A DNA stretch of 64,000 nt, taken from assembly GCF_000002075.1 (NCBI RefSeq), contig NW_004797276.1:2239950-2303949 (forward strand), read 5' to 3'. A model generated the notes under the pieces. It worked only from the letters and a program-made list of their open reading frames with translations, did not search any database and was not told where the DNA came from. Source of the stretch: Aplysia californica. Its lineage: Eukaryota. Positions 37,321-64,000 of this stretch are shown one piece after another. A program made the position numbers and the translations under genes. The stretch's first letter is position 1, and every line of letters starts with the position of its first letter.

Positions 37321-37596
37321 CTATACAAAGAAACAGTCCAAGTTGAAACAAGGTAAAAATACAATGAAAACTGACATTTGAACCCGAAAGACTTTAGGTG
37401 CTGTGACATTTTACCAATAATGCAATATTTCTCAATCTCTTCCAATCAAGTCTCAGATGTTTGCAATTTTGAAAAGCCACTGAATGAGACCTCTCCTCCA
37501 ATGGTTATAATAGCGAACGGTAATTACTGAAACTCGAAACCGGTGTGGTATATCCAAAATATAAAAAATACTTGAGAAAAATCTTTCAAATCTCAC

Positions 37597-37708
37597 CTTG
37601 ACACATAAGTGCCTTTTTATTCTTGCCTCTTCTATCTTTGGCAGTTTTGGCCAAGTACCACTCTGTTACACTGGCCTTGTACTTCAGAAGAGGCAGCCGC
37701 GCTAACAT
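37597..37708 (-). CDS. Variable exon V5
   Basis: CAG/GTGAGA, 112 nt: MLARLPLLKYKASVTEWYLAKTAKDRRGKNKKALMCQ. Confidence 0.88.
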
Positions 37709-38033
37709 CTGAATCATTACTCGGTGACAACATAATTCCCATCAAGAAGGTATGCACTTTAGAGTAGGAATAACCCCATAACCCTTTGACTACTTGGTGA
37801 AAGCTTCAATTTCATGCGTGCAAAAGTACAGCATAAGGGAACCAGATACAATACTAATCTTCAGAAAAAAGACTGTATGACGTTTCAAAATGCAGTCTAG
37901 CTTACACTTAGTTCTTTAACAAGAATGACAGTAACGAACAAGACTACGAAAAGACACAACATTTCGTGGGCTCATATCTTCTTCACACGAAGAATTCTTT
38001 ACTCAAAGAGTATGAACTGGGGTACAGTATTAC

Positions 38034-38133
38034 CTCGTTTACGACCTCTATACAGCCTTTCACATGTGCGCTGACAAAAAACAGCTGAAGTGCGTGTTTG
38101 GTCATACCTCAACAGAGGAACACGCATAAACAA
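38034..38133 (-). CDS. Variable exon V6
   Basis: TAG/GTAATA, 100 nt: LFMRVPLLRYDQTRTSAVFCQRTCERLYRGRKR. Confidence 0.88.
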
Positions 38134-38665
38134 CTACACCGGAGGGAAAAAACCAAAACAAGACAAACTCATTATGTTTCACACAATTGGACACTGCATC
38201 AATTTTCATTTTCTTCATAGAGTGTCATCACATATCTTCCCAGGAAGGTAAGCCCCTACCACATGCTTGTGATTTTGATGCTTTGATAGAATACTACGGA
38301 TTCATAGACACATAGCTACTTACGGCTGGAAATTCCCTATCGAAAAGATTTTACCAGCACCCGACATATTTCTTAAAATGGGCATATCACAGAAAAATTG
38401 TGTGTGTGTGTGCGTATGTGTGCGTGCATGTTTGTGTCCCCCCTCTCCCAAATCAGTGGGCTAACCAAAAACCCCCGAATTCAAGATCAAGAACAAAACC
38501 CATCTGCAAGCGACAAGAAGCAACAGAATGAACTCACCAACCCGTTAAAAAATATGAATGCAGCTTTGACACACCTCATACCAGACAAAGTCAGTAAACA
38601 TTGCAGGGGAGGGAAAGGTCTTAAAGAGACCTGAAACTTGTCCCACAATTAAAGATGCTGCTCAC

Positions 38666-38771
38666 CTTTGGAATAATAAACCTTTCTACTCTTTCTGTCA
38701 CTGGCTGTTTTGGCCAAGTACCACACTGCTCGGTGCACACTGTACTTCAAGATAGGTGTGCGCAACAACAC
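38666..38771 (-). CDS. Variable exon V7
   Basis: CAG/GTGAGC, 106 nt: VLLRTPILKYSVHRAVWYLAKTASDRKSRKVYYSK. Confidence 0.88.
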
Positions 38772-39131
38772 CTGGCTCACAGCAAAGACAATTTACAGAG
38801 ACTCCAGTATATTATACTTTACAATCATTAAGAGAAAGCCCAGTTACTTTTATTAATCCAAAAGGAAATCCCTGCTAAACAAAGTGAGGATCAAACTGTG
38901 GTGCAACAGATGGCCAGGAAGTACCTAGCACCTCAAGGAAAGAGAAACATCAAAACTTCTCCTTTAAAGTACCAGTTCATTATAAACAATAGAAAGTAGA
39001 AACAAGACAAGACTCGAAAGACAAAAGCAGAAAAAACTGCCACGGTCCTGAGACCAACTTTCTTACATTCTTAAACACCCCTGGAAGTAAAAATCGCTGA
39101 CTCAACAAATGGACCCAGTTGAACCACTCAC

Positions 39132-39249
39132 CTGCAAATTGTCTTCGCCTTCTGTGAGTCATTTCATACCTTCTGTGCTTTGCATTAATAGCCATGGTGG
39201 TCTCCAGACGCCTTACATTGTACCTTAACAAAGGCATACTCCTGACCAG
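39132..39249 (-). CDS. Variable exon V8
   Basis: CAG/GTGAGT, 118 nt: LVRSMPLLRYNVRRLETTMAINAKHRRYEMTHRRRRQFA. Confidence 0.88.
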
Positions 39250-40011
39250 CTGCAAAAATGTATCCTCTTATTCTATTACCCTTTAGACCAATGTCTAAAA
39301 GAAGACATTTTTTGTTCCATTTATTTACTCCCTTGACTTAAATAAAAATGACCAAGTAATGCCACTTGCCCGTCTTTCCTATTCTTAAAGAACAACATTG
39401 TAACACTTCAGTTCTGGATATTTCTAGACTAAAAGGCCATTTACACAACACCTAGCACTATATAGACCCAAGGAAAGCCAAACAAGAAAAACTAAATCAA
39501 GACCGGCTATTGGCTACCACTCCCTGTTTTTCAAAGTGTTATTACTTAGTCTCTTCCAACAATCCAAAAGAAAAGTCCATGCAAGGCAAAACCAAAGACA
39601 ATAGGTAGAGCCAATCAGAAAATATGACCATGTGAACAGGACCAGGGAAGCCTCTAAAAAAGTAATATTCAAATTGTACTTGTTATCGACCATCGCGCAT
39701 TGTAGTACATACTGAGAATTTGAGTATAAAAGTGCATTCTGAACACAAACTTTCCAGTCGTTGAAAGTCGAAGAACTGACACAAAGCAAACAGTAAAAAG
39801 CTGAATATTACCTTTGAAGATAGTAAGCATCTATAAGGAAAAAAAACCCAGCAGTTTCCATGGACAGAGAAACCAATGACAGAGACAGATCATATTCACA
39901 AAATTCTAACGGTTGAAAGGCAAGGACAAAGACAACAACACCACCATCATAACATCAACAATGATTGTTTCGGACACCAAGTACCGTTCTCAAAATCATG
40001 TGAACATGTAC

Positions 40012-40126
40012 CTCGGAGGCTTGGTCTGCAAGCTTTTCTACTGTATCTTCTGTCACTTGCATTTTTCGCAAGCATATATTGCAGTCGAAACATGCTAGCA
40101 CTCAACACAGGTATTCGTCTGATCAA
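40012..40126 (-). CDS. Variable exon V9
   Basis: CAG/GTACAT, 115 nt: LIRRIPVLSASMFRLQYMLAKNASDRRYSRKACRPSLR. Confidence 0.83.
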
Positions 40127-40242
40127 CTGTTGATGAGACACAGTAAACATAAATGTTGTCTGTGCTTGAAAAATGCCTTCGCTAACAAAGAAATTTACTC
40201 CAAACAGATGTTACCTCTTCATAGTTATTTAAAGGTACAAAC

Positions 40243-40354
40243 CTCTTGCTTTCAAACGGCGTGTCGAATCTGCTTTACGGTCACGAACACTTTTAGCAAG
40301 ATAGCCACTTACGAAAGGGATGTTAAGTCTAAGAACAGGAAATCTTAATAACAT
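40243..40354 (-). CDS. Variable exon V10
   Basis: CAG/GTTTGT, 112 nt: MLLRFPVLRLNIPFVSGYLAKSVRDRKADSTRRLKAR. Confidence 0.85.
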
Positions 40355-40529
40355 CTGAAAATGTATTTGTCGAATTAGGATGAGAACAAATTTATACCAA
40401 AGTCTTGAAAAATAAGAGCTCATTGCCTGGCACCTGGAGGTATCTGGTGAAACAACTCAAAAGTCACACGGAAGTGCATTTCATATTTTAGCCTCAGAAT
40501 TTATACTGACAGTTATTTTCTAAACTGAC

Positions 40530-40635
40530 CTTTCAAACGTCGAGCTAGATTTGCCCTCCTGTCCTGCGCAGTTTTAAGCAAATAAAAACTTGACAATTTC
40601 ACATTAAATTTCAGCAACGGCAGTCTTGAGACCAG
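40530..40635 (-). CDS. Variable exon V11
   Basis: CAG/GTCAGT, 106 nt: LVSRLPLLKFNVKLSSFYLLKTAQDRRANLARRLK. Confidence 0.88.
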
Positions 40636-41024
40636 CTGTCAAAACGAAAATAAAAAATATGAAAAAATAAAATTCTGCAGGATACACCCAAGTTTGCAGA
40701 CATTCATGCCAAGAGCATTTCTGAACAACAGTTGGTGCCTCAAGGCAAAATTTTATCTTGGATGTAATCAAAACATGACTGCCACTTCTCAGAGAGTAGA
40801 GACAAGAAGTCAAAAAGTGATATGAATACCGAGGATCCAAAAATGACAAGCTGATCAGCATAATTAGATAAAAAATAATAACCAGAAATAATTTTTTTTA
40901 AAAACTGCCTAGGGAGATCAAGACAATTCTACCATCCATACCACCAAATGGAACCATTATATATCTACTCAAGGTGCCAGAAGGAACCATGGACACAGAA
41001 AACTTCATACGGCCTTTTACCTAC

Positions 41025-41127
41025 CTTGATTTCTGCGGCTGTAACTACTTCGCCGTGCTGTCCTCACTCGAAGCATCCAACTGACATAATTTACATTGGC
41101 ACGCAGAACTGGTAACCGACGCAACAA
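41025..41127 (-). CDS. Variable exon V12
   Basis: CAG/GTAGGT, 103 nt: LLRRLPVLRANVNYVSWMLRVRTARRSSYSRRNQ. Confidence 0.88.
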
Positions 41128-41539
41128 CTGTGGCAACGTGATACACAAGAAAAATTCCTAATTCTATCCCATAAGTCAACTTACATTAAAAAAACAGGCA
41201 CTTTCTCAATCCCGTGCCAGCAGTGAAACTAGATGTGCTCGAGGGCCAGCAGTTAGTGAACTTTTGTAATGTCCAAACCAAAGAGACTTTTCAGCTTCTG
41301 CAGGACTCACCATCTGATCTTTTGTTATTGAGGAACTGAACAAAACTCTCTGAACCTTGACCTCCAAATATAAAAGTTAACCGCGCACGGTCAAAGGAGG
41401 TGAAAGAAATATTTTGAACCCTGAAAGTTTTGAAAATACACTTACAACCATTTTCTCTTTGTTTACAACATGCCAAAGCAGATCACTGGGAGATCACAAT
41501 ACATGACATACAGGGATTACCCCAGGGCTTTTTACATAC

Positions 41540-41642
41540 CTCGATTTCTGCGGTTGTAATTAGTTCGCCAGGCGGTCCTTACTCGAAGCAAATAACTCAC
41601 ATGTTCCACATTTGCACGAAGAAGTGGTAACCGTCTCAACAA
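41540..41642 (-). CDS. Variable exon V13 (close paralog of V12)
   Basis: CAG/GTATGT, 103 nt: LLRRLPLLRANVEHVSYLLRVRTAWRTNYNRRNR. Confidence 0.88.
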
Positions 41643-42107
41643 CTGACAACGCAATTCATAAGGTTTTTAATTGTTGCTTAGGTTTTACCAAGCTTCATTA
41701 TCCTTAAAAAATCTGTTTCATATGAAGGTGCTAGCAGTGAAACAATTCCTTAGCTCAGCAACCAACAGACACATGAACATGGACAAAATTAATATTTCTA
41801 GTTACTTTGATAGAGAAAGCACATTTTAACTCAGCCATACTGTTACAAGAAAAACTTAAGAGCTTTTACAAGACATTGGCTGACCCGACAGAAAAACCAG
41901 GATAAATTCCAAGAAGATATTTATCAGTGAATTTCATGTTTTGATGCGGCTCACTTATTAAAAACTTCCCAAGACAGAAACTAACATTTCGTCTCATCAG
42001 AGGAAAAGGTCCTTAATGTATTTCTAAAAATATGAAAAACACCCACAAGAAAAAAATTTAAGGATCATGCACCCAAAAAGTGTTGTGGCTGTAGCGAAAT
42101 CACAAAC

Positions 42108-42213
42108 CTTGAAATTTCTTTCTTTTTCGATAATGAATCTCTGCTGATCGAGCACTGAACAATGAAGTCACTCGCAAGGTGTCGTATCGAAGCAAAGGGA
42201 GGCGTGAGAAGAG
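42108..42213 (-). CDS. Variable exon V14
   Basis: CAG/GTTTGT, 106 nt: LFSRLPLLRYDTLRVTSLFSARSAEIHYRKRKKFQ. Confidence 0.87.
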
Positions 42214-43178
42214 CTGTTAGAGTGATACATGCTTTACTTGAGACCATAAAGCCGATATTGAAACCTACTTGCTTGAGGAATGCACAATAAATGAACTCAA
42301 AAGCCAAGTAGCAGAGCATCTAGCATCCTTAATGATCCAAAGTTCAAAGTAAACAAGACCTTCCTAGAACACTATTCACATCTTACTTATCAAAACAACC
42401 TGCCAAATACAAAGTAGGCAACTCAGAACTCTGAAATCAACACCTGAACTATAAGATGACAAAAATATCCTCCCCACAATATTAAGCACTGAAAGCAACC
42501 CCTACCCTCCACCTCCTGAAATGGATCCAAGGCACTGGTCTCGACTAGGTGATATAAATTGCAATGTGTGACTGAAATTTTTCTAAGGAGGCAACTGGCA
42601 AAACAAAACATGACTAGAACATCAACAAGAATAACGGAGACCACGTGAAAGCATTAGTTTTTACGTATAGTAAGTTTTACAGCGCTTGCAATTGTGAAAA
42701 ACGAGTTCATTTGCTTAAATTTTTAAAAAACTTTTTACTTAGAAATAGCTCAAAATATTTTAAAATACTAGAAAAAGCATCAAGTGCTATGAGACACATA
42801 TAGTCCATCAAAATCAATGGCAGACTTATGACTGTTAATTGCACAGTTCAAGTCAATGTCTCTGCTCAGTAGCAGTAAAAATGAAGGTGCTGCGGTGAAA
42901 TGGGTGACACCTTTACAAAAATCCTTCCTCAATAGTTACCAGAACAAGTTTAGCAAATTCCATGAGGTACACCAAGACCCAAAATACACCCCTTTAAAAA
43001 ATCCTTCTTGGCTGAAGGTTGGGTTACAAAGAAAACTTGGACATAAATCATTTGGAAGCATGTTTTTTTTTTATCATCGCTCTAATTTGACAGGTTTGAC
43101 AGGGGGGGAAAAATATATAATGTACGCATCATGTATGTGGGCGTTGAAAAATTCAAAAGATGAAGATTTCCATTGTAC

Positions 43179-43278
43179 CTCTCTTCTTTGCCTCATGATT
43201 TCTTGACCAAGTATTGTAACAAAATCTCGCTGAAACCCTTTTCACATCATATTGCAAAAGCGGCAGACGATGAAACAA
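43179..43278 (-). CDS. Variable exon V15
   Basis: CAG/GTACAA, 100 nt: LFHRLPLLQYDVKRVSARFCYNTWSRNHEAKKR. Confidence 0.85.
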
Positions 43279-44108
43279 CTGTCGAACAAGGATAGGTTGT
43301 GTTACGACATATGTGTTACAGCACTGCCAACACAGAAATGTCCGATGGAGCTTCAACAATGCTGTCAATCAATGCAACAAAGAACAGGGTAAACCCCACC
43401 CCAGGACAGGACGTGTCTACACTTATCTTAACTGGGCAAAAGACATCTTTTGTGAATAAAAAAGAATAGAAGAAAAGAATATCTGGTGCTGAGTGAACTC
43501 ACTATTGAATTAATATGCTACAATCACTCCAAACCTTGCATTAGTCCAACTAAAAACCAAGTATGTGCTCTCACTCCTTTCTTCATTGTTAGCACAACTG
43601 ATTTTAGAGCATAAACTCTGTACTCACTCTACAATACCGAAGCACTGAGTCTGTCCAAAGCAACAACATGCCCGTGCACTAACTTTAATATCAAAACAGC
43701 CATCATCATGTGAAATTCAGGACAAGCAAAACGGAAATCCCTTTGGATAGATCAAAGAAAAATCTCCCAAGAGTCCAGCAACTATTGCAAGACAAAAACA
43801 TACTGATACGGAGGTTCATCACATTTGGAACCAACAACAGGATATGACAACTTATGAATATTTCAGATTATCAGGACTGCGTGTCAAGTGGAAAATCAAA
43901 TGTTGCACACCCCACCCCTCTTTTAGAGTTCCATTGACAGCACAAGAATGAACAAATCAGAGAAAATAATACTTTCCTCTGACTGAGCTGGTTACAACTG
44001 TCTGCCTATGTACTGAATCATATACATATACACAAGAATTACTGCAGTTCATTGCACTTGCTCTATCAAGAGAAAAAATTTCTAGTCGGGTGACAATGAG
44101 AAGCCTAC

Positions 44109-44229
44109 CTCTCCTTCGACATCTCCAGAGTGACCTCCTTTCTTCATAGCGAATTTCAGCTGTTCTTGTGCAGAATTTTGAAACCAAACGACGTATGTGA
44201 AGTCCCAGAATTGGTTGGCGATTCACTAG
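44109..44229 (-). CDS. Variable exon V16
   Basis: CAG/GTAGGC, 121 nt: LVNRQPILGLHIRRLVSKFCTRTAEIRYEERRSLWRCRRR. Confidence 0.87.
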
Positions 44230-44409
44230 CTGTGTACAACACAAATAATCACAACCCCAAAACTTTATAAGTTCAGTCTTTCAAATTTCTAACTTGGTGC
44301 CATGCAAGGAAATTTACAATGTTTTCAGATGAAAGAGCTGTAACCAACCAGTCCATGTACCAAGATTAGCTTTTGGTCAAAAGTAGATAATTCTACAGAA
44401 AAATATCCA

Positions 44410-44510
44410 TTGAGCTCTATACAGTAACAGAGTCCACGCCAATGTACTACTGAAATGTCCCGATCAGTCGTTTTTTATCAAGGCCCAAAAACAGGAATAT
44501 TAGCTACCAG
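44410..44510 (-). pseudogene. Pseudo-exon (dead paralog of V17/V18)
   Basis: Intact acceptor, then LVANIPV, a +1 frameshift, LGLDKKRLIGTFQ*. The flanking intron matches that of V17 and no donor is recognisable. Confidence 0.75.
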
Positions 44511-45012
44511 CTGCCAAATTCAAGAAAGGAGCAAATTAAATACTCCAGGAGCCCAATAACAACTAAACAGAGGGAGGGAAAGTCCTGTACAGACTTTTGC
44601 GAGACAAGAGACCTACTTGATGTATATGCCAGAACAGAACAGCATTATGCCTGCTGCCAACACAAAACAGAATTAAGCCTACAGATCCTTGCACCATGTA
44701 AGATGTAAACCTGTCAATGAGTCAGAATTGGAGCCTCATAAAAAAAAGAAAGAAAGATAGCAACATTTACAATAATTTCCTAAACAATACTGGCACAAAC
44801 AGCGCTGAATGAGCGAATGCACATATCCACCCACACACTCAAAGCCAATAGGACAACAAATCTCCAGGAGATACAACCTGCTATTATTGTTCCAACTGCC
44901 CGCCCAAGCATTCTGATTATCTTCTCTAATTCTAAAAGACCACGGTATGATCATTACAATATTTGTTTTAATCAGTTGAACTACAGAAAGACACAAGTAA
45001 ATCTAGACTTAC

Positions 45013-45996: not shown

Positions 45997-46426
45997 CTGC
46001 CAAAATCAGCAAAGAAACACATTACAACAGACCTATTACAATTAAACTGACTAAATGCAAAGAATTTGGTTGGTTGAGTAAAGAGAAGCACATCGACACA
46101 ATAATGGTCATTTAGTGCTGGGGAAAAAGTAAGACAGACAGAAACAAAAGAGGGAAAGTAAAGAATTAGGAGCTACCAGCGGCGCCCTACAAACCACCCG
46201 CAGTGCAAAGAATGGTGAAGGTAGCAACAAGATCTCATTCAGATCAGCAACACTTTATTGAATTACTGAATGCCAGGATAGCTAAACTGTTAAAACTGCA
46301 CATACCAAAACACAAAATGGGACACCTGCGATAGGCGAGACAGGGAGGAATCACTGAGCTGACATTGCAACTACAACTCGTAAGGTCACCAAAAGTAACA
46401 ATTGATCTCTTGTCTACAAAACTCAC

Positions 46427-47361: not shown

Positions 47362-48258
47362 CTGACAAGCATAGATTGTAGTCAGACTTCGTTTATTTGG
47401 ACACAACCATTTCTACGGCTTCACAGAGTTCAAGCTTAACATACACAGTACAAAATAAAGAGCCTTCCACAACAAAAATATGACCATGTCAGAATAATCA
47501 ATAATCAAGTGATCTCAAGATGATTTTGGTAACAAGCTGCTTAAAAAAAACATATTTTGTTGCAACACTGTGGTGGTATATTTCTTCAGTTTAGTCCAGA
47601 CCCCTGTACCGTATCCTCAAGTTAAAAAATTGGTAAGACAGGAACACTATGATACTTGCAACACCACAATGCCTCAGATAGGTAGGAAAGCAGATCACCA
47701 GTTATGGAAATGGAACAAGAAACAGAAAACTACACCAGAGAAAAACTTTAGCCATCTGCATGGAGAACAACAAGAGTCAAAATAGACGACAACCAATCCT
47801 CAGAACGGACAATAAGTTCAATATGCATTTTACATTCAAGATCCATAAACACCATATACAAGGAAAGCCATGTAAATTTACACAAGGGAGTTCTTTTTAA
47901 GTGTATCATTTCACTGCAATTGTAGTCAAGACTTGACTCTCCAAACAAGATTTGCCACCCAAAAGTTTGCAATGTCATAAAAAACTATTAACGAGGTTTT
48001 TTGTACTATTTTTTTTTTAATATCGACCGCAAAAATATGTTTATAAGGACTTTAATAATTTTGTTTTCACACAGTTCAGTCAGGCAAAAACATACACCTG
48101 GGAAAAAAGCAAACAGCTAAGACAGTCTTCAACCACTGCAAAGTACTGTTCCAGAACATAATAATTATACAGGAAGGGGATTCAAACTTTTTTAAAAATG
48201 TGATGAAAAAAGTGCTTCTCAATAACAACAAACCAAACATCTTCATCAGGTCTCTCAC

Positions 48259-48364: not shown

Positions 48365-48586
48365 CTGCAGAAAAAAAATAAAATGCAGACCACAGAATAT
48401 GCCATGCTCCGTGCTCCAGTAATCCCACGGAAACAACCATACCTTAATAGGACAATTATCACAACTGCTGATGCTGTGGTACAAGCACAAAAGATTCACA
48501 TATTTCTATTAACATCTTAATTCTACACCATAACTAAAGAAATTTCAAAGGAATGAAATTTGGTAGTTGCAATAAGACAGGCAAAC

Positions 48587-48686: not shown

Positions 48687-48918
48687 CTGTGAAGTGACAA
48701 GAGAGAGAATATCCTCAAATGGGACCAACCTTGACTAAAACAAGAATTTCATCAATAACTTTCAGAATAATGTGTGCAGTGGTGAACAGAAGAGTGGCCA
48801 TGACTAAATTAAACTGTACAGTTAATCTCTTGACTACTTCAACACAAGGGAACAGATTATTTCTTTTTTTAAAAACTATTGAGGCCTTTTAACAGATGAA
48901 ACGTGAAGTGCGACCTAC

Positions 48919-49426: not shown

Positions 49427-49499
49427 CTACAGCAGAATAGGGATAATCAATATTTCTGACTGCTAATATATAAGGAAGCAAAGGGAACAAATTACTCAC

Positions 49500-49605: not shown

Positions 49606-50432
49606 CTGTTAAAAATACAGACTCATCTTACACAATCATGCCATCAATAGGAAATTGAAAAGGTTATTATTTCTTTGTACTTCAAAACGTTTTTCGAAAT
49701 TCAAGAAATCAAAAGCCCTCTTGCCCTACACACAATCCCAAACGCAGTCTTTCACGAAAAAGAATGGCTAGAGACCCTAAGCAAGCTATACCAGTGGGAC
49801 GGACTACTGACACAACAGATCCAAAATCAATCAATCTCCTTATGAATGTATGACAGGACAGAAACAACTTCTAACAACATCCATGTGTGTTGTGCATCAC
49901 AGGCGTAACTAAACATTACAGTCACTCAACACCAGTGAAAAACCTCTCAAAGATACATTTCGAGTGACCAATCAGAAGATATTTTAATCATCCCCAAAAC
50001 ATATCGCTTGCCCAGTACCAAGTGTCTGTACAATGTGAAGAGGCTGTACATCACTTTCACTATGTTGTGTGAGGACTATCTTTGCCAAATAACCAGCTGA
50101 CGAGACTTGTTTTTGTTATCAGGTGTGCGCTGTCTAGGTTGTTATGAAAATGTCCCTTTGTACAGCTTTATCTGTTGGCGTGTTTCACGAACTGAAGTGG
50201 GCATTAAGAGGAAGTGACCGTGCATTTACATGTTTAATTACATTGTTTTAACAAAACTGTCGCACAAGGAAAGCCTACGTTTGAGCGCAACTTTGTATGG
50301 TGTGCGTTTTGGAGGAAACTACTGTAGTAGCATTGTATGGGGTAAATCAAGCCTGTTTTCGTTCAAGTGAATAGCAAAATTCTGAGACTCGTAAATAGAT
50401 AGAGGGTGGAAGAATGCACGAGCACTTCTCAC

Positions 50433-50544: not shown

Positions 50545-50947
50545 CTGGTGACAAGCAATCAAATGTTATTCATAAAACCTCAAAATGTCATTTTTCAGAG
50601 ACAATCAAGTCTTGCCTTTTTTTTTGATGCTGGGAAATTATAGAGACAAGCTGTGAAGAATCTCATTTCTGTTGGATCCTATTGCATATCGTCAACTTTC
50701 AAACTTTTGGCTTCCATACCAAAAATTGCTTCCCAGCGAGAACCCCACGACATAACAAGACCTGTTTATTGAGAAAGTTCATTCAAACAACCTGTCACTT
50801 TTCCAATGCTGAAGATGTAACAACCTGTACAGCAGGAGCACATTCAATTTTTAAAGAAAGAAGAAAACTGTTCAAAAGCAAAATAGCGAATAGAACAGCC
50901 TCGTGACTCTATAGGTCCACTTTGGTCTCAACACTGGCCTACCTTAC

Positions 50948-51053: not shown

Positions 51054-51613
51054 CTGTTGATAGCAGTACAAATATATCTACACGTAAATTTGATGTGCTT
51101 ATTTAACACAGATGAGTGTCATGGCCAGTTCAACAGGAATTATTTGACAAACTGACAGCTACCACCCCTAATCTTTTAATGCTGATTGAAAAGTTAAAAT
51201 TTTTTGGGAACAAGAAAATGCCCTAAAAAGACCAGTGCTAGAAGAGATAAGACGTTGAAACCAATCTAAGTCATGTCAGACAACTAAAAATCTATGCATA
51301 CATGTGTGTACATCACCGGTCATGTTTTCATAGCCAAGAGGACTCTTCTTCCAAAATAACAGGACTTCGATGAATTTTCCATGAAGAAATGAACAAGTGT
51401 ATGAGTACAATAAAGAACTATGGAATCTGGATTAGAAAACTGAAATTCTAAACCCCTGACCTCGTTTTCATAAAAAGCCCATACAAGACGACAAGAAAAC
51501 CTGAAAAATCGCAACTTCACTTTCATCTTTTGCCCAGTGCCAATTTTGCAAACGGGGTGAAAGAAAGCAGATACAAACTGAAAAAAAATATATTGCTGAA
51601 AAAGTGTAGCTAC

Positions 51614-51722: not shown

Positions 51723-52030
51723 CTGTCAAAATAATATACCACAAACGGGTGTCCATCATTACTATCTAATAAATAGTGAGGGGAAGAGGCAGTCCTTAAA
51801 GTTACTACCTGTGGTGAAATTCTATGTTACAAAGCAAACCAAAATTGTGAATTAAATCAGTCCTAACCTGTCACATCCAAACACCAAGAAACAAAATTGT
51901 ATCTATGTATATAAGAACAGAATCATTTAAAAAGTTTCAGGAACAGTCACAAGAATTCTTTTTTTATTGTACTAAACAAAAAATGAATTGTCCTCTCCAC
52001 AATTGCCTTACGTTTCCACAGATCACTCAC

Positions 52031-52130: not shown

Positions 52131-52215
52131 CTGAACAGAGACGTAAAATTACAGTTACAAATTGAAATGGGATGGCTTGGCCAAAAGGTAATAAAATAAT
52201 ATCAGCATGACATAC

Positions 52216-52318: not shown

Positions 52319-53160
52319 CTTAAAAAGACAGAATTTGAGGAAAAGAGGTCATCGTTGTAATTTCATTGTTGTAACTTTATTGTGAGCAACAATAGCCAGA
52401 AGAAAAACCACTAAAAAATGTCTTCGCAACATGAGATCAGTCATTTTAAGTAACAAGACCCTATAGGCTCAAAGTGCTATGGGGAAGTTCCAAATTCTGA
52501 TTGCCACCCAAGCCTCCATGAAAGACTTGCTATTAACATCTCCTAATCAGTCATGAACTTACCATGGAAATACACCAAGGACAAAGTACAAGGAGAAGAG
52601 ACCTATTTTTTTAATAGCTCGAGGTGGTCTAGAAAACAAACCAAAGTAGTGATTGAGGATCAACAATTTTACAAAAGAAAAGCTGAAGAAAGAACTGAAC
52701 CGCACACAAGTAATCTTTCAATACAAAATATATTCCGGGTTGTTCTTTTTTACAACTACAACATAACCGCGAAGCTTCCTGTAAGGATTTTTTTTAGTTG
52801 AATAGTAATAAATAGGTTCAAACGGTCCCAAATGCCTGTACACTAATCATGTCTGTGACACAGATATCTAAAACTACGGCAACTGACTCGATTGTACCTA
52901 AATCCAAAATTCCGTTGTTGGCTGGGAGGTATGTAGACCGACACGGGATGGAAGAAGCAAGCGAAAGTTCTCAGAGTTGTAGAGAGATAGATACCGTGAA
53001 TCAACACAACAGTAGCCACATTTCCCCAGACATGGGACAATCAAAACAGGGAAAAAGCAAAAGGAGCAAATCACACAAGCGCCCATAAACCAACTGCACC
53101 TTACAAAGAAGTAAGATTAGTGGAAACTCGCTGATTGAAAAAAAAAAGCATATATATTAC

Positions 53161-53629: not shown

Positions 53630-54042
53630 CTGTACAAAGTACCAGTGTACTAATAACAAAACTACAGACAGTACAACAGACTTTTTTCCTAAAGAATCCA
53701 ATTCCAAAAGGAGCTGTGACAATACAAAATGTATTTTTCTCAATACAGGGGTTTACAGCTACCAATTATGCGTTGATCTACTTTGTGGCCTATGTACAGG
53801 ACCTGTACAACTAAATCCTCCTGTAGACCTCTCATCTAATTTAAACCTTTTATCAGTTTCTTATTTAAACCTCTTATCAGATTCTAATCCAAAGCTACAA
53901 TGACTCCACAGATGAGCACCAAGACAGACTCCCAACAAAACCAAGGACCAAAGTATCCAATGACTGATGCTGAGAACATATCTCAGGGACAATCAACTCT
54001 GTTCCACTGCATACAGAAAAACAAAGAAACAGCCAAACTTAC

Positions 54043-54527: not shown

Positions 54528-54641
54528 CTGACAATCAAAAGAGTAAAATTCTACAGGATAGCACTGATGCAGCACATGAGCCCTTTTGGCAGTTGGCAAG
54601 CAGTTAAAAACAAAAGAGCACAACCTTACAAGTCCACTTAC

Positions 54642-55748: not shown

Positions 55749-56462
55749 CTGAGAAGAAAATACTCCAGCTAAAATGTGATAACGGCTACCCCAGACAATA
55801 AAAAAGGTCGAGTAAAAAATATATAGACATAGCTACATAATTCTCTACAACTAAAACCACTTTCCAAACCAGAGCATGATAAAACAGTCAAGCACTAAAA
55901 GAAGTATGAAAGAAGACATAAGATTTGGTAAAGATGAGACAAGACACTGAAAGTGTCCAAAGAGCCCAACAAATCAATGCCTTTCTTTGTGGCAAGGACA
56001 AGTACATATTAAGTCATACTGAGAAAGAATCCAAACTCTATCCAAGCATGAAACAAAACTGAAATGGTCCATAAAGACAAAAATAATACGACAACCTTAA
56101 TGGAAGTAGACAAAAGTGGCAAAAAATATCACTAATCCAAATCAAATTACTCAAATCACAATCTTCAAAGAAACAGCCTTTAACAGGTACTTCAAGGCCA
56201 AACAAGTTTGTTGACAAATATTCAAAAACTGACCACACCTTTCATTTGACACTGCAATAATTCAATAGCTTTCCTACAAGTTTTTCACGACACCATGCCT
56301 CACAAACAAAAGGAAAAGCAAAACATTCCACAACGAGCCAGGTGGGAATTCATTAACATCCCAGTCTGACAGTAACTTCATAATCTCAAAAACACTTGCC
56401 CCACACATTCACCAGCCACTGATGCACACTCTTTCTTACGATTTCATTTGAAAAGCACTTAC

Positions 56463-56568: not shown

Positions 56569-57024
56569 CTAAAACAGGCCAAAAAAAAAGAGGTAAAACA
56601 AAATCAATCTCTATATCAGCTGACCTTTCCATCGACATCTTTCAATGAAATTTCCACAATGAACATTAAAACAACGATAAAGAAAAGCCTAATGTACTAG
56701 AAAATACAATGAAAAAAGCATGGCCATCTTGACTTGGTGAGGTGAACAGAAACCTCCAAAGTAGAAACTTCCATCCAGGACGTATTTTCTATAAGACATG
56801 AAAAGAGCCAATAGGAGGAATCAGTGAAGTGGGACTATTTGTTACTTACTCTGTACAATTGTACTAAGGTTAATTTCTATCACTACTTAAGAGACACAAA
56901 AAATGGTATTGGTTCTGTACTCACAAGACAACTTACGATTTCTGTCACTGACTCAATAAACTACAAACATAAACAAAAGACCTAAACACTAGTCAGCAAA
57001 ATGCTGTACATACGAAGTACTTAC

Positions 57025-57136
57025 TGCTACATTTGAGTCGCCAGTTTCTCATGGTATTTTTTGACATACACCTACGATAAAGAAGATCCATTGTTCTATG
57101 AAAATTTCTCTTCAATACAGGCAGCCTGGAGAAAAG
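57025..57136 (-). CDS. Variable exon V38
   Basis: CAG/GTAAGT, 112 nt: LFSRLPVLKRNFHRTMDLLYRRCMSKNTMRNWRLKCS. Confidence 0.88.
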
Positions 57137-57434
57137 CTGATGACAAAGAACTAATTCTTAAGTTGTATACACCCAAATTGCACCAATAACAATGAACAGT
57201 AAGCAAACTAATGACAGAGCCTTTTTGGAATTGTTGCAGGCAACAAGTAACATCATGAGACAAGTGCTGCATTATATCATCAGCTGAAATCACCTATTAC
57301 AAGGAGTACACCAAAGATGCTTTACAGGTCGACTCTTAACAACAACACAGATGATCTACTTGCTCCTATCAGGAACAGACAGATATTAAATGCACAGGCT
57401 GCCAACGTCCAAATAAACCTTAAAATGTACTCAC

Positions 57435-57543
57435 TAGACTTTTTTAATTTCTTGGCATATAAGACACGTGAGCGAGAGTTTTGATAAAGGCAATTTTCCA
57501 CCCAAGCTGGAGCTGCTCTCAGAACAGGGAGACGTCTCAGAAG
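57435..57543 (-). CDS. Variable exon V39
   Basis: TAG/GTGAGT, 109 nt: LLRRLPVLRAAPAWVENCLYQNSRSRVLYAKKLKKS. Confidence 0.88.
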
Positions 57544-57712
57544 CTACAAGTGAAAGAAAATACAAATCACTGGGACACTGACATTCTCCTTAAGGACTCG
57601 CCCTTCGCTGAAGATGGTGTGTGGCCTCCTAATGCCATGCTTATTTAGAACACAAAGGTAAACCCAGAATAGCAGTATCCTTAGATGGACATATTCTTTT
57701 TTTTTCACTTAC

Positions 57713-57830
57713 TGCTTTTGAGATTTCGACACCGCTTGCTCCTCATGTAAACTTTATTGCGAGAATTTGTGTACATAAGATGCTCAGCCCGATCATAATC
57801 CATCAGAAGGCACGGCAAACGTTTAAACAG
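57713..57830 (-). CDS. Variable exon V40
   Basis: CAG/GTAAGT, 118 nt: LFKRLPCLLMDYDRAEHLMYTNSRNKVYMRSKRCRNLKS. Confidence 0.88.
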
Positions 57831-58482
57831 CTGAAGTGAAAGACAAACACGACCTTGTATCTATATTGACCAACTCTATGGTGCTATGGTGACGAAAAAT
57901 TACCCTTCAATGCCTTTCTCAAGCAGGGAAGACTGCCGTAAATCGTAAAAGAAATTGGTCCAAAGTACTTAACATTCACATACATGTGCATTTTTAGGAT
58001 GGCTGTACGCATTATCACACATGAGAACAAGACTAAACCCAGAATAAGAAAAGCGACTACAAAAGACAACCAACTTCTATTTAGAGTCTAATATGAAAAC
58101 AAGACAAGAAAAACAGAACAAAACTTGACTTCTCTTGTTCAAAGTACAAAAACAAAAAATTGATCAGGTAAAAAAGACATTCACAAAATAAAACACAAAA
58201 ACTACTGGCTTTCGTAAAACAACTCCCTTACATCCAATAAATGTACGTGCATGCAGGTGCAATGTACCTTTTGAACTCTTTGGTAAATTTCTGCTCCACA
58301 CATTATGAGGCCCTACACTCGCGGTTATTCAAAACAATGGAATCATGTCCATTTTTTCTTTTGTACTGACCCAGGTATGTTTCTCAATTCCCCCCTTGGA
58401 AAACCTATATTTCAACAGAAGCTGCTGTAAAAAGATGGTCATATATTACTACTGAGTCTGAGCCTTGTAGGAACCAACTTAC

Positions 58483-58603
58483 TTCTTTGTTGAGCTTGAG
58501 CTAAGCGCTTAGACCTCATGTGCATCTTGATCCGACAATTGGTATACAAAACTTCTGATGTTCTGATGATGTCATGAGATAAGATTGGCAGCCTGGCCAG
58601 TAG
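58483..58603 (-). CDS. Variable exon V41
   Basis: TAG/GTAAGT, 121 nt: LLARLPILSHDIIRTSEVLYTNCRIKMHMRSKRLAQAQQR. Confidence 0.88.
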
Positions 58604-58678
58604 CTAGGATTCAGAAAATGAACACATAAGGACTTCGAACTTGTGTGAAATTTGTATTGTGAGTCAAATGTTTCTCAC

Positions 58679-58787
58679 CTGCATTTTTTGTTCTGGATCT
58701 CATATAGATCTTGTGGTAGGTTTTTTTGTGCAAAAGAAACTCAGCTCTGCCTCTGTTTTGTTTCAATATTGGCAAACGACGAAACAA
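58679..58787 (-). CDS. Variable exon V42
   Basis: CAG/GTGAGA, 109 nt: LFRRLPILKQNRGRAEFLLHKKTYHKIYMRSRTKNA. Confidence 0.88.
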
Positions 58788-59156
58788 CTGATGTTTGAGA
58801 GAAAAACGAAGTAAATTTGAGGTAGACAGACTAACTACAACTAACAAAACACAAAAAATGTCAATCAACACCATGTCCGCACCTTACTTCATTTTCTTTG
58901 ACAGTCTTGAACCATTATATGCCAATTCTACTCGAGTTTTACACACAGACACCATTACCTCTTTTCTCTAACAACTCCGTCAATTGATCAAACAAACCAG
59001 CCACTGCATTTCCAGCAAGCAATAGAGCTCAAAAACACTTAAAACACACAGTCAGTTCTTTTTAGAGTTTTGGTTGAAATCCATTACATCTAAACTCTCT
59101 AAGAAACTAATGGATTCTCTTCTACATAGTACAAAACTAGTTTACCAAGGACATAC

Positions 59157-59268
59157 CTCTAACTATTTGACGAGACTGTCTGCGCCTCATTTTCTCGTAA
59201 CAGTTTATACGCATAATGCACTCAGTTTTTCCAACATTACCCATCAAGATGGGCAACCGATGAAACAA
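59157..59268 (-). CDS. Variable exon V43
   Basis: CAG/GTATGT, 112 nt: LFHRLPILMGNVGKTECIMRINCYEKMRRRQSRQIVR. Confidence 0.88.
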
Positions 59269-59609
59269 CTGAAGAGGAAAGGATGGGAGGAGAAAGAATA
59301 ATTGTCATAAACATCTTGTCCTACTGCTCCGTAACAAACCAAGTGTGAGCCCTGATGACCCTTTAAAATGTGTGGTTTCTTTAGTTTCTTCGAAGATATC
59401 AGCCAGTTAACCTAATCCTTTTCACTGAACAAAACAGAAAGTACCGTCCATTTTTTCTTACATCTGAAGCAACCTTCACTTAAACCTATCAATATCTGGA
59501 ACCTACTCCATACCTAAAGGACAAAACTTTTCCTGAAAAGATCACCAACAGAACTACCTCAACATCAGATGATACATTTACTGAGAGAAGCCAACAGAAA
59601 ACACAATCA

Positions 59610-59694
59610 TCAGTTTACAAGAACTTGCTCTTGACTAGTATTTGAAAAGAAGACAAGGTACATTTTTTTTTAAAATTGGGAGTACTTTAAATAA
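59610..59694 (-). pseudogene. Probable pseudo-exon (acceptor lost, internal stop)
   Basis: LFKVLPILKKNVPCLLFKY*SRASS, preceded by ttttgtcc instead of AG. Confidence 0.5.
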
Positions 59695-59968
59695 GGACAA
59701 AACCGTGACTGAACAAGATCTACAGAACGAACTGAATGGACCGTACCACCAAATGAAGCAAGTAAACACGGTCACCTGATACCCGTTACATAAAATATCA
59801 GCATCAGTAACATCCAAACAATTTTAGGAAATCCATATCGGTCCCACTATTTTTGGCTCACTAACTACCCCATCCATATTATGCAGTTCAGCACTTTGGT
59901 AACTGACTTGTAGACTACTTTTTTAACAATTGAGTGTCAAAACGGACGAACTAATAAAAAAAATATAC

Positions 59969-60074
59969 CATCAAACTTCATCCTCCATCTCGAAACCCTT
60001 TTCTTTCCATTTGTGTAAAGAATTTCAGTACATCTCTCTCGCCAGGCAGCAAGAATTGGAATGCGCCGCAAAAG
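59969..60074 (-). CDS. Variable exon V44
   Basis: TAG/GTATAT, 106 nt: LLRRIPILAAWRERCTEILYTNGKKRVSRWRMKFD. Confidence 0.86.
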
Positions 60075-60517
60075 CTAGGAATGGACAGAATAACAAATTT
60101 AGGGGGAAATGACACAGTTAACCACCATCTTACACTGTAGTTGCCTGTCCCGGTCCCTGTACATTCTCCTCATGCTGTTTATATAAAAATTGTCCACAAC
60201 TGATGAGCACCTTGCTTGCAATATTGGCATTCGCCTAAATAGCTGAGATACAATGAAGGATACACTTTAAAAGAGTGTGCGTTTGATACTAGCCCTTCTG
60301 AAGTTGTTGCACTATCGTCACCACTAGCATAAAGAGCACTCACTAGCATAAAGAGCACAAATAAAAGCTTTTGCATCTCCAATCTGTCTGATAACTATTT
60401 TCTACAAGTTAGAAAGGACCTTAAAAATTGATCTACAAAAATTGTCTGTGGCACACCTTGCTATTTTAGGTTTTAAAAAACTAGAAACTGCTTGATCAAC
60501 ATTCAGTGGTGACTTAC

Positions 60518-60614
60518 CCTGTTTCTGCCTTTGCACTCTCCTCATACAGTTAACATACAAGTATTGCTGTGTGCGTTCTATGCTGTACTGAAGAACGGGC
60601 AAGCGACTAACCAT
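60518..60614 (-). CDS. Variable exon V45
   Basis: CAG/GTAAGT, 97 nt: MVSRLPVLQYSIERTQQYLYVNCMRRVQRQKQ. Confidence 0.88.
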
Positions 60615-60855
60615 CTGGAGTATAGTTGCATTGGTAAAATATTTCAGACTGACCATGCGGAACAATAGCTGAAGTCAGTTTACTCCAAATCATACAGTAC
60701 TGTGGCGAGCGAGTTAGGAATTCAGTATTATCAAAACCTGAAGCCCCATAGTTAGCATGCACTGTTTTATTAGTCAACATTTGCTATTTATCAGCTCAAA
60801 AAGATTTCATTTCACCAATATATCACTGAGTAAATACTACACACTACGTACTTAC

Positions 60856-60967
60856 TTTTGTAAGTTGCCCTCAGGCGTCTTTTTTGCATTTTCCGAGTTG
60901 CATTAATATAGAAAGTCTCCAGTGCTCTTTTGCGGTGGTATGTGAGGACAGGCATACGGAGGAAAAG
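60856..60967 (-). CDS. Variable exon V46
   Basis: CAG/GTAAGT, 112 nt: LFLRMPVLTYHRKRALETFYINATRKMQKRRLRATYK. Confidence 0.88.
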
Positions 60968-61208
60968 CTGGCATTTTGAAAGTAAGTTGGAGGTGACAAC
61001 AAAGAGAATTACAGTAAAAGTAGAGAATTGATCTACAGGAACAACTTGGTCACAATTTCATAGAAAACAGCACCTGAGCTTAACTTCAAGTTTGCAATCC
61101 CTTCCATCGTTTCCACTCACTACATAAAAGTTCCGACTCAAAAACAACAAGAATAGTGGGGCAATTCAAACTTTCATGTGACAGTCAACAGCTGTTTAGC
61201 GTACTTAC

Positions 61209-61335
61209 GGTCTTTCATCATCATTGCATGAGTCCTGGTCTGCCTCCACCTGCGAGAGTTTCTACCTGCCCTCTCGTTGAACATATGCTCTACTCTAAGG
61301 GCATCCTCTCGCAACAAAGGCAAGCGGCCGAAAAG
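61209..61335 (-). CDS. Variable exon V47
   Basis: CAG/GTAAGT, 127 nt: LFGRLPLLREDALRVEHMFNERAGRNSRRWRQTRTHAMMMKD. Confidence 0.88.
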
Positions 61336-61477
61336 CTGAACAGAACGAGAATGAACATTCACTAAGCTCTCCCAGAGTTTACTTCTCGCTGTAATCCCTT
61401 ACACGGGAACCACAGTGAACTCAACAAAAAGAGAACCTTGCCAAAACTGAGATCACTGTGCTTATTCTTTTACTTAC

Positions 61478-61595
61478 TCCACTGAGCTGCAGACTTGTTC
61501 ATCCGCTGAAGCTGATTTCTCTTCCTTGCATTGACATACATTACTTCTTGAGCACGAAGCGCACTGCAGCGAAGTTGAGGCATTCTATTAAATAA
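61478..61595 (-). CDS. Variable exon V48
   Basis: CAG/GTAAGT, 118 nt: LFNRMPQLRCSALRAQEVMYVNARKRNQLQRMNKSAAQW. Confidence 0.88.
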
Positions 61596-61752
61596 CTGGG
61601 ATCACAAAGGAGGGGAAAAATCAGTCTCTTCAAAAATGTTCGGAATTCAAGGGTTACCTCAGAGATAGATCACCCTCAACTTGAACTATAAGATGCAAAT
61701 GCAAACAGCAGCATCTCAGGATGTAAATCAAAGACAAACGATAGAAACTCAC

Positions 61753-61870
61753 TGAAACCAATATCTTTTTGTCTACAGCGCCTCACTGACATCTTCTTCA
61801 TGCTGTTTGCATAGAACAGTGCCTCTGTCCGCAGCGAGTTTTGAGCAAGAACAGGTATTCGTAGATACAA
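61753..61870 (-). CDS. Variable exon V49
   Basis: CAG/GTGAGT, 118 nt: LYLRIPVLAQNSLRTEALFYANSMKKMSVRRCRQKDIGF. Confidence 0.88.
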
Positions 61871-62344
61871 CTGTGCAACACGAAAGATCATGATTATCCA
61901 GAGAAGACAAAACACAGATGGAAGTATGAAGTAAGATCGTCATTCAAACTATACAAGGATTTCCCTCATTTACAGTTTAGTGTTGTGGTCTCAGCCACAG
62001 CCACAATCTATAATATATTTTGGTCCAAGTACAAAAAAATATTTTTGTCTGTCTCTTTTTCTTCATCAATGGTTTTTCGTCCTGGGTTTTATTCTTAAAT
62101 TATCTGTTTGTTCTCCAGCCTGAACCCAGCACACTTTATTCGTGTGGTTGAAACAGGCATATATATCAGTACTTCTTTACTGTTTACACATGTCGTACTG
62201 AGTAAAATTACCAGGAGAACTTTCCCCTGTCCAAGTATATTTTGAAACTTTCAAGCTAAAATTTGTATGCTAAGGCATACCAGTGAAAAGTGGCATACAG
62301 TATTATCTCTGAAATTTCTCTCGATCTCCATCTGCAGCCTGTCA

Positions 62345-62412
62345 GTTTCAGCGCATTGAGCACTTTTTTGTGGAAATGCGCTATATAAATGCAATTTATT
62401 ATTATTATTATT
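62345..62412 (+). mobile_element. Short L2-type retroposon 3' tail inside an array intron
   Basis: cagcgcattgagcac...gcgctatataaatgcaatt(tat)n, similar to 960-1045. Confidence 0.55.
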
Positions 62413-62975
62413 CTCTTCCAGGAACTCTTTTCATTCTTTGTCTACATTGACCATGCACACAACCACGCCCTCTTTTAGCACTAGCCAGCCCTCTGATTCT
62501 TTGTGGAAGTACTTAGCTGAAGAAGTAATAACTAACTTTCACCCTGAATGAGAATCTGTGTGTCAATTGCATAAATGTCATCAGAATCATGGCACTATTT
62601 CCCAGAGCTTTTACATTATTTCAATCCATAAAAAACTCATTTAACACCTCTCAGCTGTGTAAGATTTCTTTGCCATCATTCATAATATTAAAATCAACTG
62701 ACCTACATTCGAATGAGAACCATTACGGTTTGAATTGAGCATTAGATTATTATCTTAGAGTTCTCTCTTCGACATTACTTTAGCGAGGGAAATCATTGAG
62801 ATAAAATAGCACAATTAATCTATTTGCAGTATCAATTCAAATAGGGAATCCCTATATGTTGGCAGCTGGAGATGAATCGTGAGCACAAAAATTCCTGTGC
62901 GTGGTACCAAATGTGTGAATCGCTGGCCAAAACAACTATTAGAGAGTAAATCAGTCTATTTCATAAACAACTCAC

Positions 62976-63081
62976 TTTTGTCCCTGCAGCGTCTGTATGA
63001 CAACTTTGCTGAGCAGTTCTTAATAAAATACAAGCTCGCACGCTTATAACAGCTACTGAGAATAGGCATCCGTGAAAATAT
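62976..63081 (-). CDS. Variable exon V50
   Basis: CAG/GTGAGT, 106 nt: IFSRMPILSSCYKRASLYFIKNCSAKLSYRRCRDK. Confidence 0.88.
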
Positions 63082-64000
63082 CTGTGAATATTTTCATCAA
63101 ACTTTTCTCATTGATTGTAAACCAAAGCAATTTCAAGGTGCTGCGACTTGACAATGCATTTCTAATAAGTCAAAACCTAACAAAGAAAAAGTTAAAAAAC
63201 AAACTTAAGGAGATATTCAGTGTCCATTCATAGCCTCCCTTTATCATTTCTTTTTCAGTCTCCATGCATGACCTACATTCAACTCTGTAAGAAAAGAAAG
63301 CACTGGAGTGCAGATCTACACCAGTATGTTTAGCAGTGGTTCAACAGAAGTATGGAAGGTCTTGGCAACAGAAGAGGCAATTTGAGATTGATTTAACTAG
63401 CCAAGTCAGCAGGACCCACGGTGGCAGGAAAGAAAAAAAAAAGAATGCCTTAAGGGTACACTTTGTCAGTCACCTGCTTTTTAAGCAATATAACCATACC
63501 TTTTTTAGTCTACCCCTTGGCTGTAAGGGACACAAAAAAGCCGTGTGGCACCATGGAGGACCTACTAACAACAACCTACTTCGTTATGAACAATGCCATT
63601 TTCACCAATCTCTCAACAACAACAAAAATCCACATTAACAACTGAGATCCAGTCAGAAGCCACCAAAAAAATATTGAATGATAAATCAACAGCAATGAAT
63701 AAAAAGCCCCATTACCCAGAAAACCTAGGGTAGTTATCTTCAGTTAAAAGTCAGTATGCTGGCATCACTCTCACAATTTGTCATTAAAATATCAAACGTG
63801 TCAATATAAGCATAAATATGCTTTGCAAAATACTTCAAAAGAACTTAAATGTCAGGAACTGCAACCAGAATACAAACAATTGGACAATGAACAAGACACA
63901 ACTTAACCTCAGTCGCCCTCACCAGAACTGGGAGCTAACAAACCAACGCTCTGTACACCCTTCCACGACTAGGGAGGGGTCTTTGAAATTATTGATATAA

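Follow-up and report, generated by a model that had tools for sequence, protein, structure and literature searches.

The window analysed here, a stretch of 64,000 nucleotides (nt) from Aplysia californica (G000:C6:2239950-2303949, in an assembly of 927 megabases (Mb) and 4,332 contigs), carries 51 tandem homologous cassette exons of the gene LOC101860137 on its minus strand, between 63081 and 35643. From the evidence described below, and by analogy with the exon 6 cluster of Dscam1, we consider it highly probable that this array works as a docking-site/selector exon chooser of the Dscam1 exon 6 type. An iterated nhmmer profile recovered 50 homologous units, all on the minus strand, between 63088 and 35670, and the 51st cassette (37320-37215), absent from this set, was recognised through RefSeq isoform X22. 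All 51 cassettes have an AG acceptor and a GT donor (donor consensus GTAAGT), measure 97-127 nt and share a single open frame counted from the acceptor; every length is 3n+1, after revision of four cassette donors. The introns between them span 59-1105 nt, with a median of 389. In transcript order, from acceptor to donor, the cassettes lie at 63081-62976, 61870-61753, 61595-61478, 61335-61209, 60967-60856, 60614-60518, 60242-60134, 60074-59969, 59268-59157, 58787-58679, 58603-58483, 57830-57713, 57543-57435, 57136-57025, 56568-56463, 55748-55628, 54753-54642, 54527-54416, 54148-54043, 53629-53524, 53278-53161, 52318-52216, 52130-52031, 51722-51614, 51053-50948, 50544-50433, 49605-49500, 49426-49330, 49018-48919, 48686-48587, 48364-48259, 47361-47256, 46535-46427, 45996-45897, 45112-45013, 44229-44109, 43278-43179, 42213-42108, 41642-41540, 41127-41025, 40635-40530, 40354-40243, 40126-40012, 39249-39132, 38771-38666, 38133-38034, 37708-37597, 37320-37215, 36626-36512, 36261-36162 and 35754-35643, and they are named below by their acceptor positions.

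The exons on either side of the array are constant. The first coding exon is located 10.8-11.6 kilobases (kb) past the window end, and the last upstream constant exon (...KALAE) ends in phase 0 at 69037, on the window scale extended past 64000. It is separated from cassette 1 by an intron of 5,955 nt, the 3' part of which occupies 63082-64000 (minus strand) of the window. Downstream of the array, a constant exon beginning QFKSPGQ (33830-33981, minus strand), identical in 15 of 15 RefSeq isoforms, has a phase 1 acceptor that fits the 3n+1 cassettes, and the RefSeq isoforms end in a coding exon that encodes an acidic C-terminus followed by the stop (32390-32736, minus strand). Since the upstream exon ends in phase 0 and the downstream acceptor (33981) is in phase 1, exactly one 3n+1 cassette keeps the frame. 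The 90%-identity protein cluster of LOC101860137 holds 33 isoforms, and each of the 15 RefSeq isoforms examined contained one cassette between identical N- and C-terminal constant parts. Thirteen of these cassettes were as predicted, one used a shorter donor at the 52318 cassette, and one was the 51st cassette; the full-length proteins are all database records. The array also holds recent duplicates (families D5 and D7, 81% identity), a dead cassette copy related to the 45112 and 45996 cassettes, with an in-frame stop after 10 codons (44481-44517, minus strand), and, after the last cassette, a possible degenerate 52nd cassette of 106 nt that is open but has a weak donor and an atypical peptide (35469-35574, minus strand).

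An initial annotation of the window had listed 15 variants of a recurrent intronic motif and predicted that they share a complementary partner, with the plus-strand sequence tttcaccacagcacc, located past base 64000 in the intron that follows the upstream constant exon. An exact 15/15 match to this partner lies 691-705 nt beyond the end of the window (L002:691-705), its strand and its intron both as predicted, and was the sole match with at most two mismatches in 104 kb (the window and 40 kb beyond it). Further words enriched upstream of the acceptors (GCACCA, AAAGGG and GGCTCTT in transcript sense) were complementary to the flanks of the 15-mer, indicating a docking site about 44 nt long. The 43-nt docking core, which reads AGGATAAAGAGCCCTTTTGATTTTGGTGCTGTGGTGAAACAAA in transcript sense with the predicted 15-mer at its centre, lies on the minus strand 686-728 nt past the window end (L002:686-728, G000:C6:2304635-2304677); in the transcript, the constant-exon donor is 4.3 kb before it and the acceptor of cassette 1 follows it by 1.6 kb. 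The core contains stop codons in all three frames, and an Rfam search of the docking region returned no match. A 41-mer from the site occurs once in the 927-Mb genome at up to three mismatches.

The docking site was also recovered by an unbiased scan that made no use of the annotated motif, in which each 40-nt window of flanking sequence was given the summed enrichment z-scores of the reverse complements of all its 6-mers. Among 56,123 Aplysia windows, the docking site came out on top, scoring 77.0 compared to 43.8 for the next window (mean 1.5, standard deviation 9.3; z about 8).

Related loci were found in other gastropods. When the C-terminal part of the Lymnaea ortholog was used as a query, the matches included LOC101860137, orthologs with many isoforms in Physella, Biomphalaria and Bradybaena (two genes), and incomplete orthologs in Plakobranchus, Elysia and Candidula; the 90%-identity protein clusters hold 49 member sequences for Physella and 43 for Biomphalaria. 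We counted 57 cassette-like units at the Lymnaea stagnalis locus (L006) and 41 in Biomphalaria glabrata (L007), as well as, at two partial loci, 9 in Candidula (L008) and 16 in Plakobranchus (L009). All lie on the strand of the gene, and nearly all are open and 3n+1. Twenty cassettes have reciprocal-best, collinear orthologs in at least three species. The five species compared, all heterobranch gastropods, span the clade Euthyneura, a split of a couple of hundred million years or more. At the Lymnaea locus, the QFKSPG start of the downstream constant exon was observed a second time, in frame, inside the array, upstream of the last six cassettes (L006:59581).

The unbiased scan again placed the docking site first in Lymnaea (z 12.7) and Biomphalaria (z 11.5; in both cases with the first intron left out), and the runners-up in these scans were poly-G or TA repeats. 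In a five-species alignment of Aplysia, Plakobranchus, Lymnaea, Biomphalaria and Candidula, the 43-nt core was invariant, and the 41-mer is present with zero or one mismatch in each species, always between the constant exon and the first cassette. Two other conserved blocks were noticed nearby in the five species. The first, of about 34 nt, lies directly upstream of the docking core (within L002:730-790, minus strand); the second, of about 28 nt, lies 110-180 nt downstream of it (within L002:520-560, minus strand), and in four species a short word resembling a selector comes after this second block. Across the five species, RNAalifold paired the upstream block with the downstream block, and no compensatory, double-sided change backs this pairing.

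We then turned to the cassette side of the proposed pairing. The 15 annotated strings were all present at their plus-strand positions (37397, 38896, 41214, 41727, 42886, 43485, 46115, 48470, 48774, 50626, 51809, 52474, 57880, 60700 and 63137). Whether the motif recurs beyond expectation depended on the measure: an ungapped 15-mer search allowing three mismatches was not significant (4 matches compared to 2.25 expected), but de novo 6-mer enrichment bore the recurrence out, the top 6-mers in the 250 nt upstream of acceptors, relative to dinucleotide shuffles, being overlapping pieces of the motif and its extension. Among the 14 most enriched 6-mers, 9 in Aplysia, 11 in Lymnaea and 9 in Biomphalaria are substrings of the perfect docking complement, where about 0.1 would be expected. 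Complementarity of the introns to the docking site was then scored by local alignment (G-C 3, A-U 2, G-U 1, mismatch -3, gap -4) against dinucleotide shuffles. The mean z was 0.87 in Aplysia, with p<=0.05 in 9 of 51 introns and the sense strand beating the antisense strand 36:11; the corresponding values were 1.42, 17 of 55 and 45:7 in Lymnaea, and 2.00, 18 of 38 and 34:3 in Biomphalaria. Ungapped helices of at least 12 pairs were present in 16 Aplysia, 27 Lymnaea and 19 Biomphalaria introns, compared to 8, 7 and 4 in shuffles. The gapped alignments cover most of the docking site; counted by the half on which they fall, left to right, the longest helices number 15:33, 22:29 and 14:21 in the same three species. 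Mismatch-tolerant counting of 10-mers was discarded because it was swamped by T-rich words, and z-scored k-mers were used instead; likewise, RNAduplex applied to entire introns with a docking region of 66 nt was replaced by the local pairing alignment, since every intron yielded long gapped duplexes that were over-fitted.

The complementary segments are positioned with respect to the acceptors, in agreement with the positional bias proposed for the motif. In 22 of 31 Aplysia introns of at least 300 nt (9.9 expected), the end of the best segment lies 40-200 nt before the acceptor, and the same bias was seen in long introns of Lymnaea (15 of 21, 7.1 expected) and Biomphalaria (10 of 12, 4.5 expected). 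The centre of the best segment falls between -150 and -50 relative to the acceptor in 15 of these 31 Aplysia introns, compared to 6.1 expected (P about 2e-4). Of the annotated sites, most of which were described as lying just 5' of acceptors, 14 of 15 are inside the intron segment most complementary to the docking site. Site 37397 appeared to be 771 nt from an acceptor, and is 77 nt upstream of one once the 51st cassette is counted. The exception is the orphan selector at 42886-42900 (minus strand), 673 nt upstream of the 42213 acceptor, in which all 15 positions can pair with the docking core (one as G-U); no cassette-like sequence was found after it.

Departures of the segments from the perfect docking complement favour those that preserve pairing. 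With sites selected blind to G-U pairs, wobble-preserving transitions were found at 110 out of 1407 sites, compared to 27 out of 838 for pair-breaking transitions (odds ratio 2.5, P 6e-6), so that the argument first made from G-U wobbles among the 15 strings holds. Per site, C-to-U and A-to-G departures are 2.5 times as frequent as U-to-C and G-to-A, an excess to which T-rich introns may contribute in part but which remains in a comparison restricted to changes towards the same base. Selector type is also often kept between the introns of orthologous cassettes, with right-half selectors before the 48686 and 43278 cassettes and left-half selectors before the 54527 and 60242 cassettes. Orthologs of the 48686 cassette (site 48774) in Lymnaea and Biomphalaria have near-identical right-half selectors, the orthologous introns of the 43278 cassette (site 43485) have similar selectors in both species, and orthologs of the 54527 cassette in both have the same left-half selector.

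Candidate selectors were then considered individually, each p value comparing the best segment in the last 300 nt of the intron with 200 shuffles and each energy being that of the predicted duplex in kcal/mol; all coordinates are on the minus strand. The lowest p value was obtained before the 54527 cassette, for a segment matching the left docking half (54578-54615, p 0.005, -33.3). Candidates with p<=0.05 also precede the 53629 (53690-53737, p 0.010, -28.4), 49426 (49441-49482, p 0.010, in a 73-nt intron), 56568 (56711-56757, p 0.015, -29.7), 38133 (38266-38294, p 0.015) and 61595 (61661-61699, p 0.050) cassettes. Five others coincide with annotated sites: 48470 before the 48364 cassette (48462-48492, p 0.020, -26.7), 41727 before 41642 (41705-41751, p 0.020, -28.7), 57880 before 57830 (57870-57906, offset -76 to -40, p 0.025, -28.8), 41214 before 41127 (41189-41229, p 0.040, -30.9) and 60700 before 60614 (60683-60708, p 0.050, -24.1). 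Values between 0.05 and 0.1 were obtained before the 47361 (47545-47575, p 0.055), 49605 (49706-49753, left docking half, p 0.055), 51053 (51161-51205, p 0.055), 40354 (40410-40455, p 0.060, -30.5), 52318 (site 52474; 52455-52498, p 0.070, -28.2), 55748 (55853-55886, p 0.080) and 37320 cassettes, the last being the 51st (site 37397; 37380-37408, offset -88 to -60, p 0.090, -32.1). A weak A/U-rich candidate before the 61870 cassette (62017-62046) reached p 0.055, but at -13 kcal/mol only. The remaining annotated sites lie in segments that are not significant alone: 63137, before cassette 1 (63128-63147, p 0.71, -19.1); 51809, with a 10-nt perfect core (51784-51819, p 0.25, -25.1); 50626 (50615-50637, p 0.16); 48774 (48759-48791, p 0.18 in Aplysia and 0.016 in Lymnaea); 46115 (46111-46128, p 0.42); 43485 (43478-43497, p 0.24 in Aplysia); and 38896 (38891-38908, p 0.53).

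While examining these regions, we also noticed that 8 of 51 upstream regions, compared to 0.3 expected, contain the 8-mer AGAAATAT. As a rule it lies 10-80 nt before the selector; it was not found in the corresponding regions of Lymnaea and Biomphalaria. A docking-like word together with the exact complement of AGAAATAT is present at 34030-33991 (minus strand), 12-50 nt upstream of the downstream constant acceptor, and this element can form a two-part helix with the intron before the 48364 cassette (z 4.0). As a general docking site it was rejected: its mean z over all introns was 0.27, sense equalled antisense, and it is absent in Lymnaea and Biomphalaria.

The potential for docking-selector pairing, and its conservation, are thus present at this locus. 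That such pairing takes place in vivo and controls exon choice is something we infer by analogy with Dscam1 exon 6. In the mechanism we propose, the intron that follows the last upstream constant exon carries a single docking site, AGGATAAAGAGCCCTTTTGATTTTGGTGCTGTGGTGAAACAAA, in the pre-mRNA, and most of the 51 cassettes would be preceded, about 40-200 nt upstream of the acceptor, by a degenerate selector complementary to part of it. The docking site would pair with one selector at a time, looping out the intervening cassettes and bringing the chosen acceptor near the constant donor. Pairing would activate the cassette just downstream of the engaged selector, and the remaining cassettes would be skipped. 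Since every cassette is 3n+1, two-cassette transcripts would be frameshifted, and these would probably be removed by nonsense-mediated decay.

Complementarity and conservation show the potential for pairing and not its consequence, and the duplexes might form but serve another role, such as a general opening or looping of the array, countering a bias to the first-transcribed cassettes, back-splicing of looped-out cassettes or provision of double-stranded RNA substrates for editing. Two more conserved blocks flank the docking site, and in Dscam1, RNA pairings of distinct function (balancers and the locus control region) exist beside the docking site (PMC8791459). We nevertheless regard a role of this kind as improbable, given that selectors lie at a fixed short distance upstream of individual acceptors and that orthologous cassettes retain their own selector type, two features that fit per-exon activation better than a global role. 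Still less probable, in our estimation, is that the motifs are binding sites for a splicing protein, or neutral relics of unit duplication, and that their complementarity to the docking site has no function. Tandem duplication does copy flanking intron sequence with the exon (PMC6071210), and the D5 and D7 families attest to recent duplication here. However, the enriched words do not form a single motif but tile the 44-nt complement, some matching the left half and some the right; their partner is inverted, genome-unique and, over 43 nt, unchanged in five species whose intron sequence around it has diverged; substitutions favour G-U; and the signal is confined to the sense strand. A chance resemblance picked by eye, for which the weak ungapped count could be cited, is excluded for practical purposes by the exact predicted partner, the z-scores of 8-13 in three species and the replication in independent genomes.

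Several observations weigh against docking-site/selector choice as set out here, or at least against its simplest form. When only the last 300 nt of introns are considered, p<=0.05 is obtained for 11 of the 51 Aplysia introns and p<=0.1 for 19 of them, and several short introns (59-116 nt) contain no credible selector. No significant selector signal was detected in Candidula or Plakobranchus, where only 9 and 13 introns, respectively, were usable. Because strong helices form on either docking half, two selectors could in principle pair at once, unlike in a strict one-at-a-time scheme, and for the same reason mutual exclusion by pairing alone is not guaranteed. The excess of wobble-preserving changes is variation of the kind expected from RNA pairing; as to the cross-species covariation that the initial annotation had offered as a check, double compensatory changes cannot be scored because the docking site never varies. 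Finally, a run search listed none recorded as RNA that contains the stretch, and over 5.9 kb of the array, two poly-A RNA sequencing runs with the same species label gave only 22 and 27 reads, too few for junctions and with no joints listed, so that the one-cassette rule rests on the RefSeq models. Of the Dscam1 exon 6-like reading as originally put forward, then, the predicted docking site, its conservation and the selector pattern stand, but a convincing selector for every cassette and a causal role in exon choice do not follow from these data.

The nature of the encoded protein was also considered. The N-terminal domain encoded by the first coding exon belongs to a family of 316 proteins with varied C-termini, some of which carry C2H2 zinc fingers, and the product of LOC101860137 is probably nuclear. 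Pfam gave no match for the cassettes, the flanking exons or the full-length Lymnaea ortholog (E up to 10 for the ortholog). An AlphaFold2 model of isoform X8 had a mean predicted local distance difference test (pLDDT) score of 41.7, such that the helices alone are usable; it contains two long helices only, and the cassette is modelled as most of a long basic helix (pLDDT 85-94). A BEN-domain identity, considered for the cassette region, found no support: the ortholog (E up to 10) and the cassettes lack a Pfam BEN match, and the model shows the two helices only. RefSeq XP_005089540.1 (isoform X17) carries the name 'AT-rich interactive domain-containing protein 1A', which looks like a misnomer because X17 differs from the other isoforms in its cassette only. 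Upstream of the gene, 35.6-37.3 kb past the window end (L005:5648-7318, minus strand), same-strand open frames with C2H2 zinc fingers were observed, perhaps a neighbouring member of the same head-domain family. Loose ends of RNA sequencing reads reflected mostly A-rich priming; at 57697-57716, reads stop in plus-strand T runs beside an A-rich stretch just past the 57830 cassette, most likely due to internal oligo-dT priming on intron RNA.

A full-text literature search returned docking/selector work on arthropod Dscam1, other insect genes and a few vertebrate two-exon cases, and nothing on molluscs or these gene identifiers. For large exon arrays, control of this type is described in the papers found for arthropod Dscam1 alone. 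While the isoforms are visible in RefSeq, the docking/selector mechanism appears undescribed. As a speculation that we hold to be rather unlikely, though worth stating, the array could constitute a convergent 'Dscam of the nucleus': through a docking-site/selector RNA switch, each heterobranch cell would come to express, perhaps by a stochastic choice, a transcription-factor-like protein with a single basic recognition helix out of about 50 alternatives; were this so, cell-identity diversity of the surface-receptor type would act at nucleic-acid binding. The locus draws attention to a gastropod protein, so far unstudied, whose basic helix comes in about 50 alternative versions and which is found in neurobiology models (Aplysia and Lymnaea) and in the schistosome vector Biomphalaria. 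With a docking site invariant over sea hares, sacoglossans, pond snails and land snails, the array would also offer a natural replicate for open questions in splicing, such as how distal selectors compete and how unchosen exons are silenced.

Among known systems, the Dscam1 clusters of exons 4 and 9 and the known small clusters resemble the Aplysia array in that competing intronic RNA pairings choose among tandem exons. In exons 4 and 9, however, the docking site is downstream of the cluster (PMC8791459), whereas that of Aplysia is upstream, and the small clusters hold 2-5 exons compared to 51. In vertebrate ATE1 (PMC7797038), conserved intronic elements likewise compete for pairing, although between two exons and without an array. 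In the duplication model of Ivanov and Pervouchine 2018 (PMC6071210), selectors originate when an exon is copied together with one arm of an intronic stem, and the Aplysia selectors, 40-200 nt upstream of acceptors, fit this model in their position, the sole point compared. The closest counterpart is the Dscam1 exon 6 cluster of Drosophila and other pancrustaceans, whose docking site and selectors were originally described in 2005 (cited in PMC8791459). The two differ in several respects. The Aplysia gene is unrelated and belongs to another phylum (Mollusca, Heterobranchia), its protein has no surface-receptor signal and belongs to a family with members that end in C2H2 zinc fingers, and its cassette is modelled as most of a long basic helix and not half an immunoglobulin domain. 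Its selectors are split between two docking halves, several of its very short introns are without a convincing selector, and no equivalent of the repressor hrp36 is known for the array. In both systems, a large tandem homologous array (48 exons in the fly, 51 in Aplysia) contributes one exon per mRNA, the intron that follows the upstream constant exon holds one conserved docking site, and degenerate upstream selectors, in Aplysia evident collectively, are complementary to overlapping parts of this site; the conserved block of about 34 nt in Aplysia sits at the position of the locus control region in Dscam1. An independent second array of Dscam1-like size, in another phylum and an unrelated protein, would show that this solution can be reached more than once.

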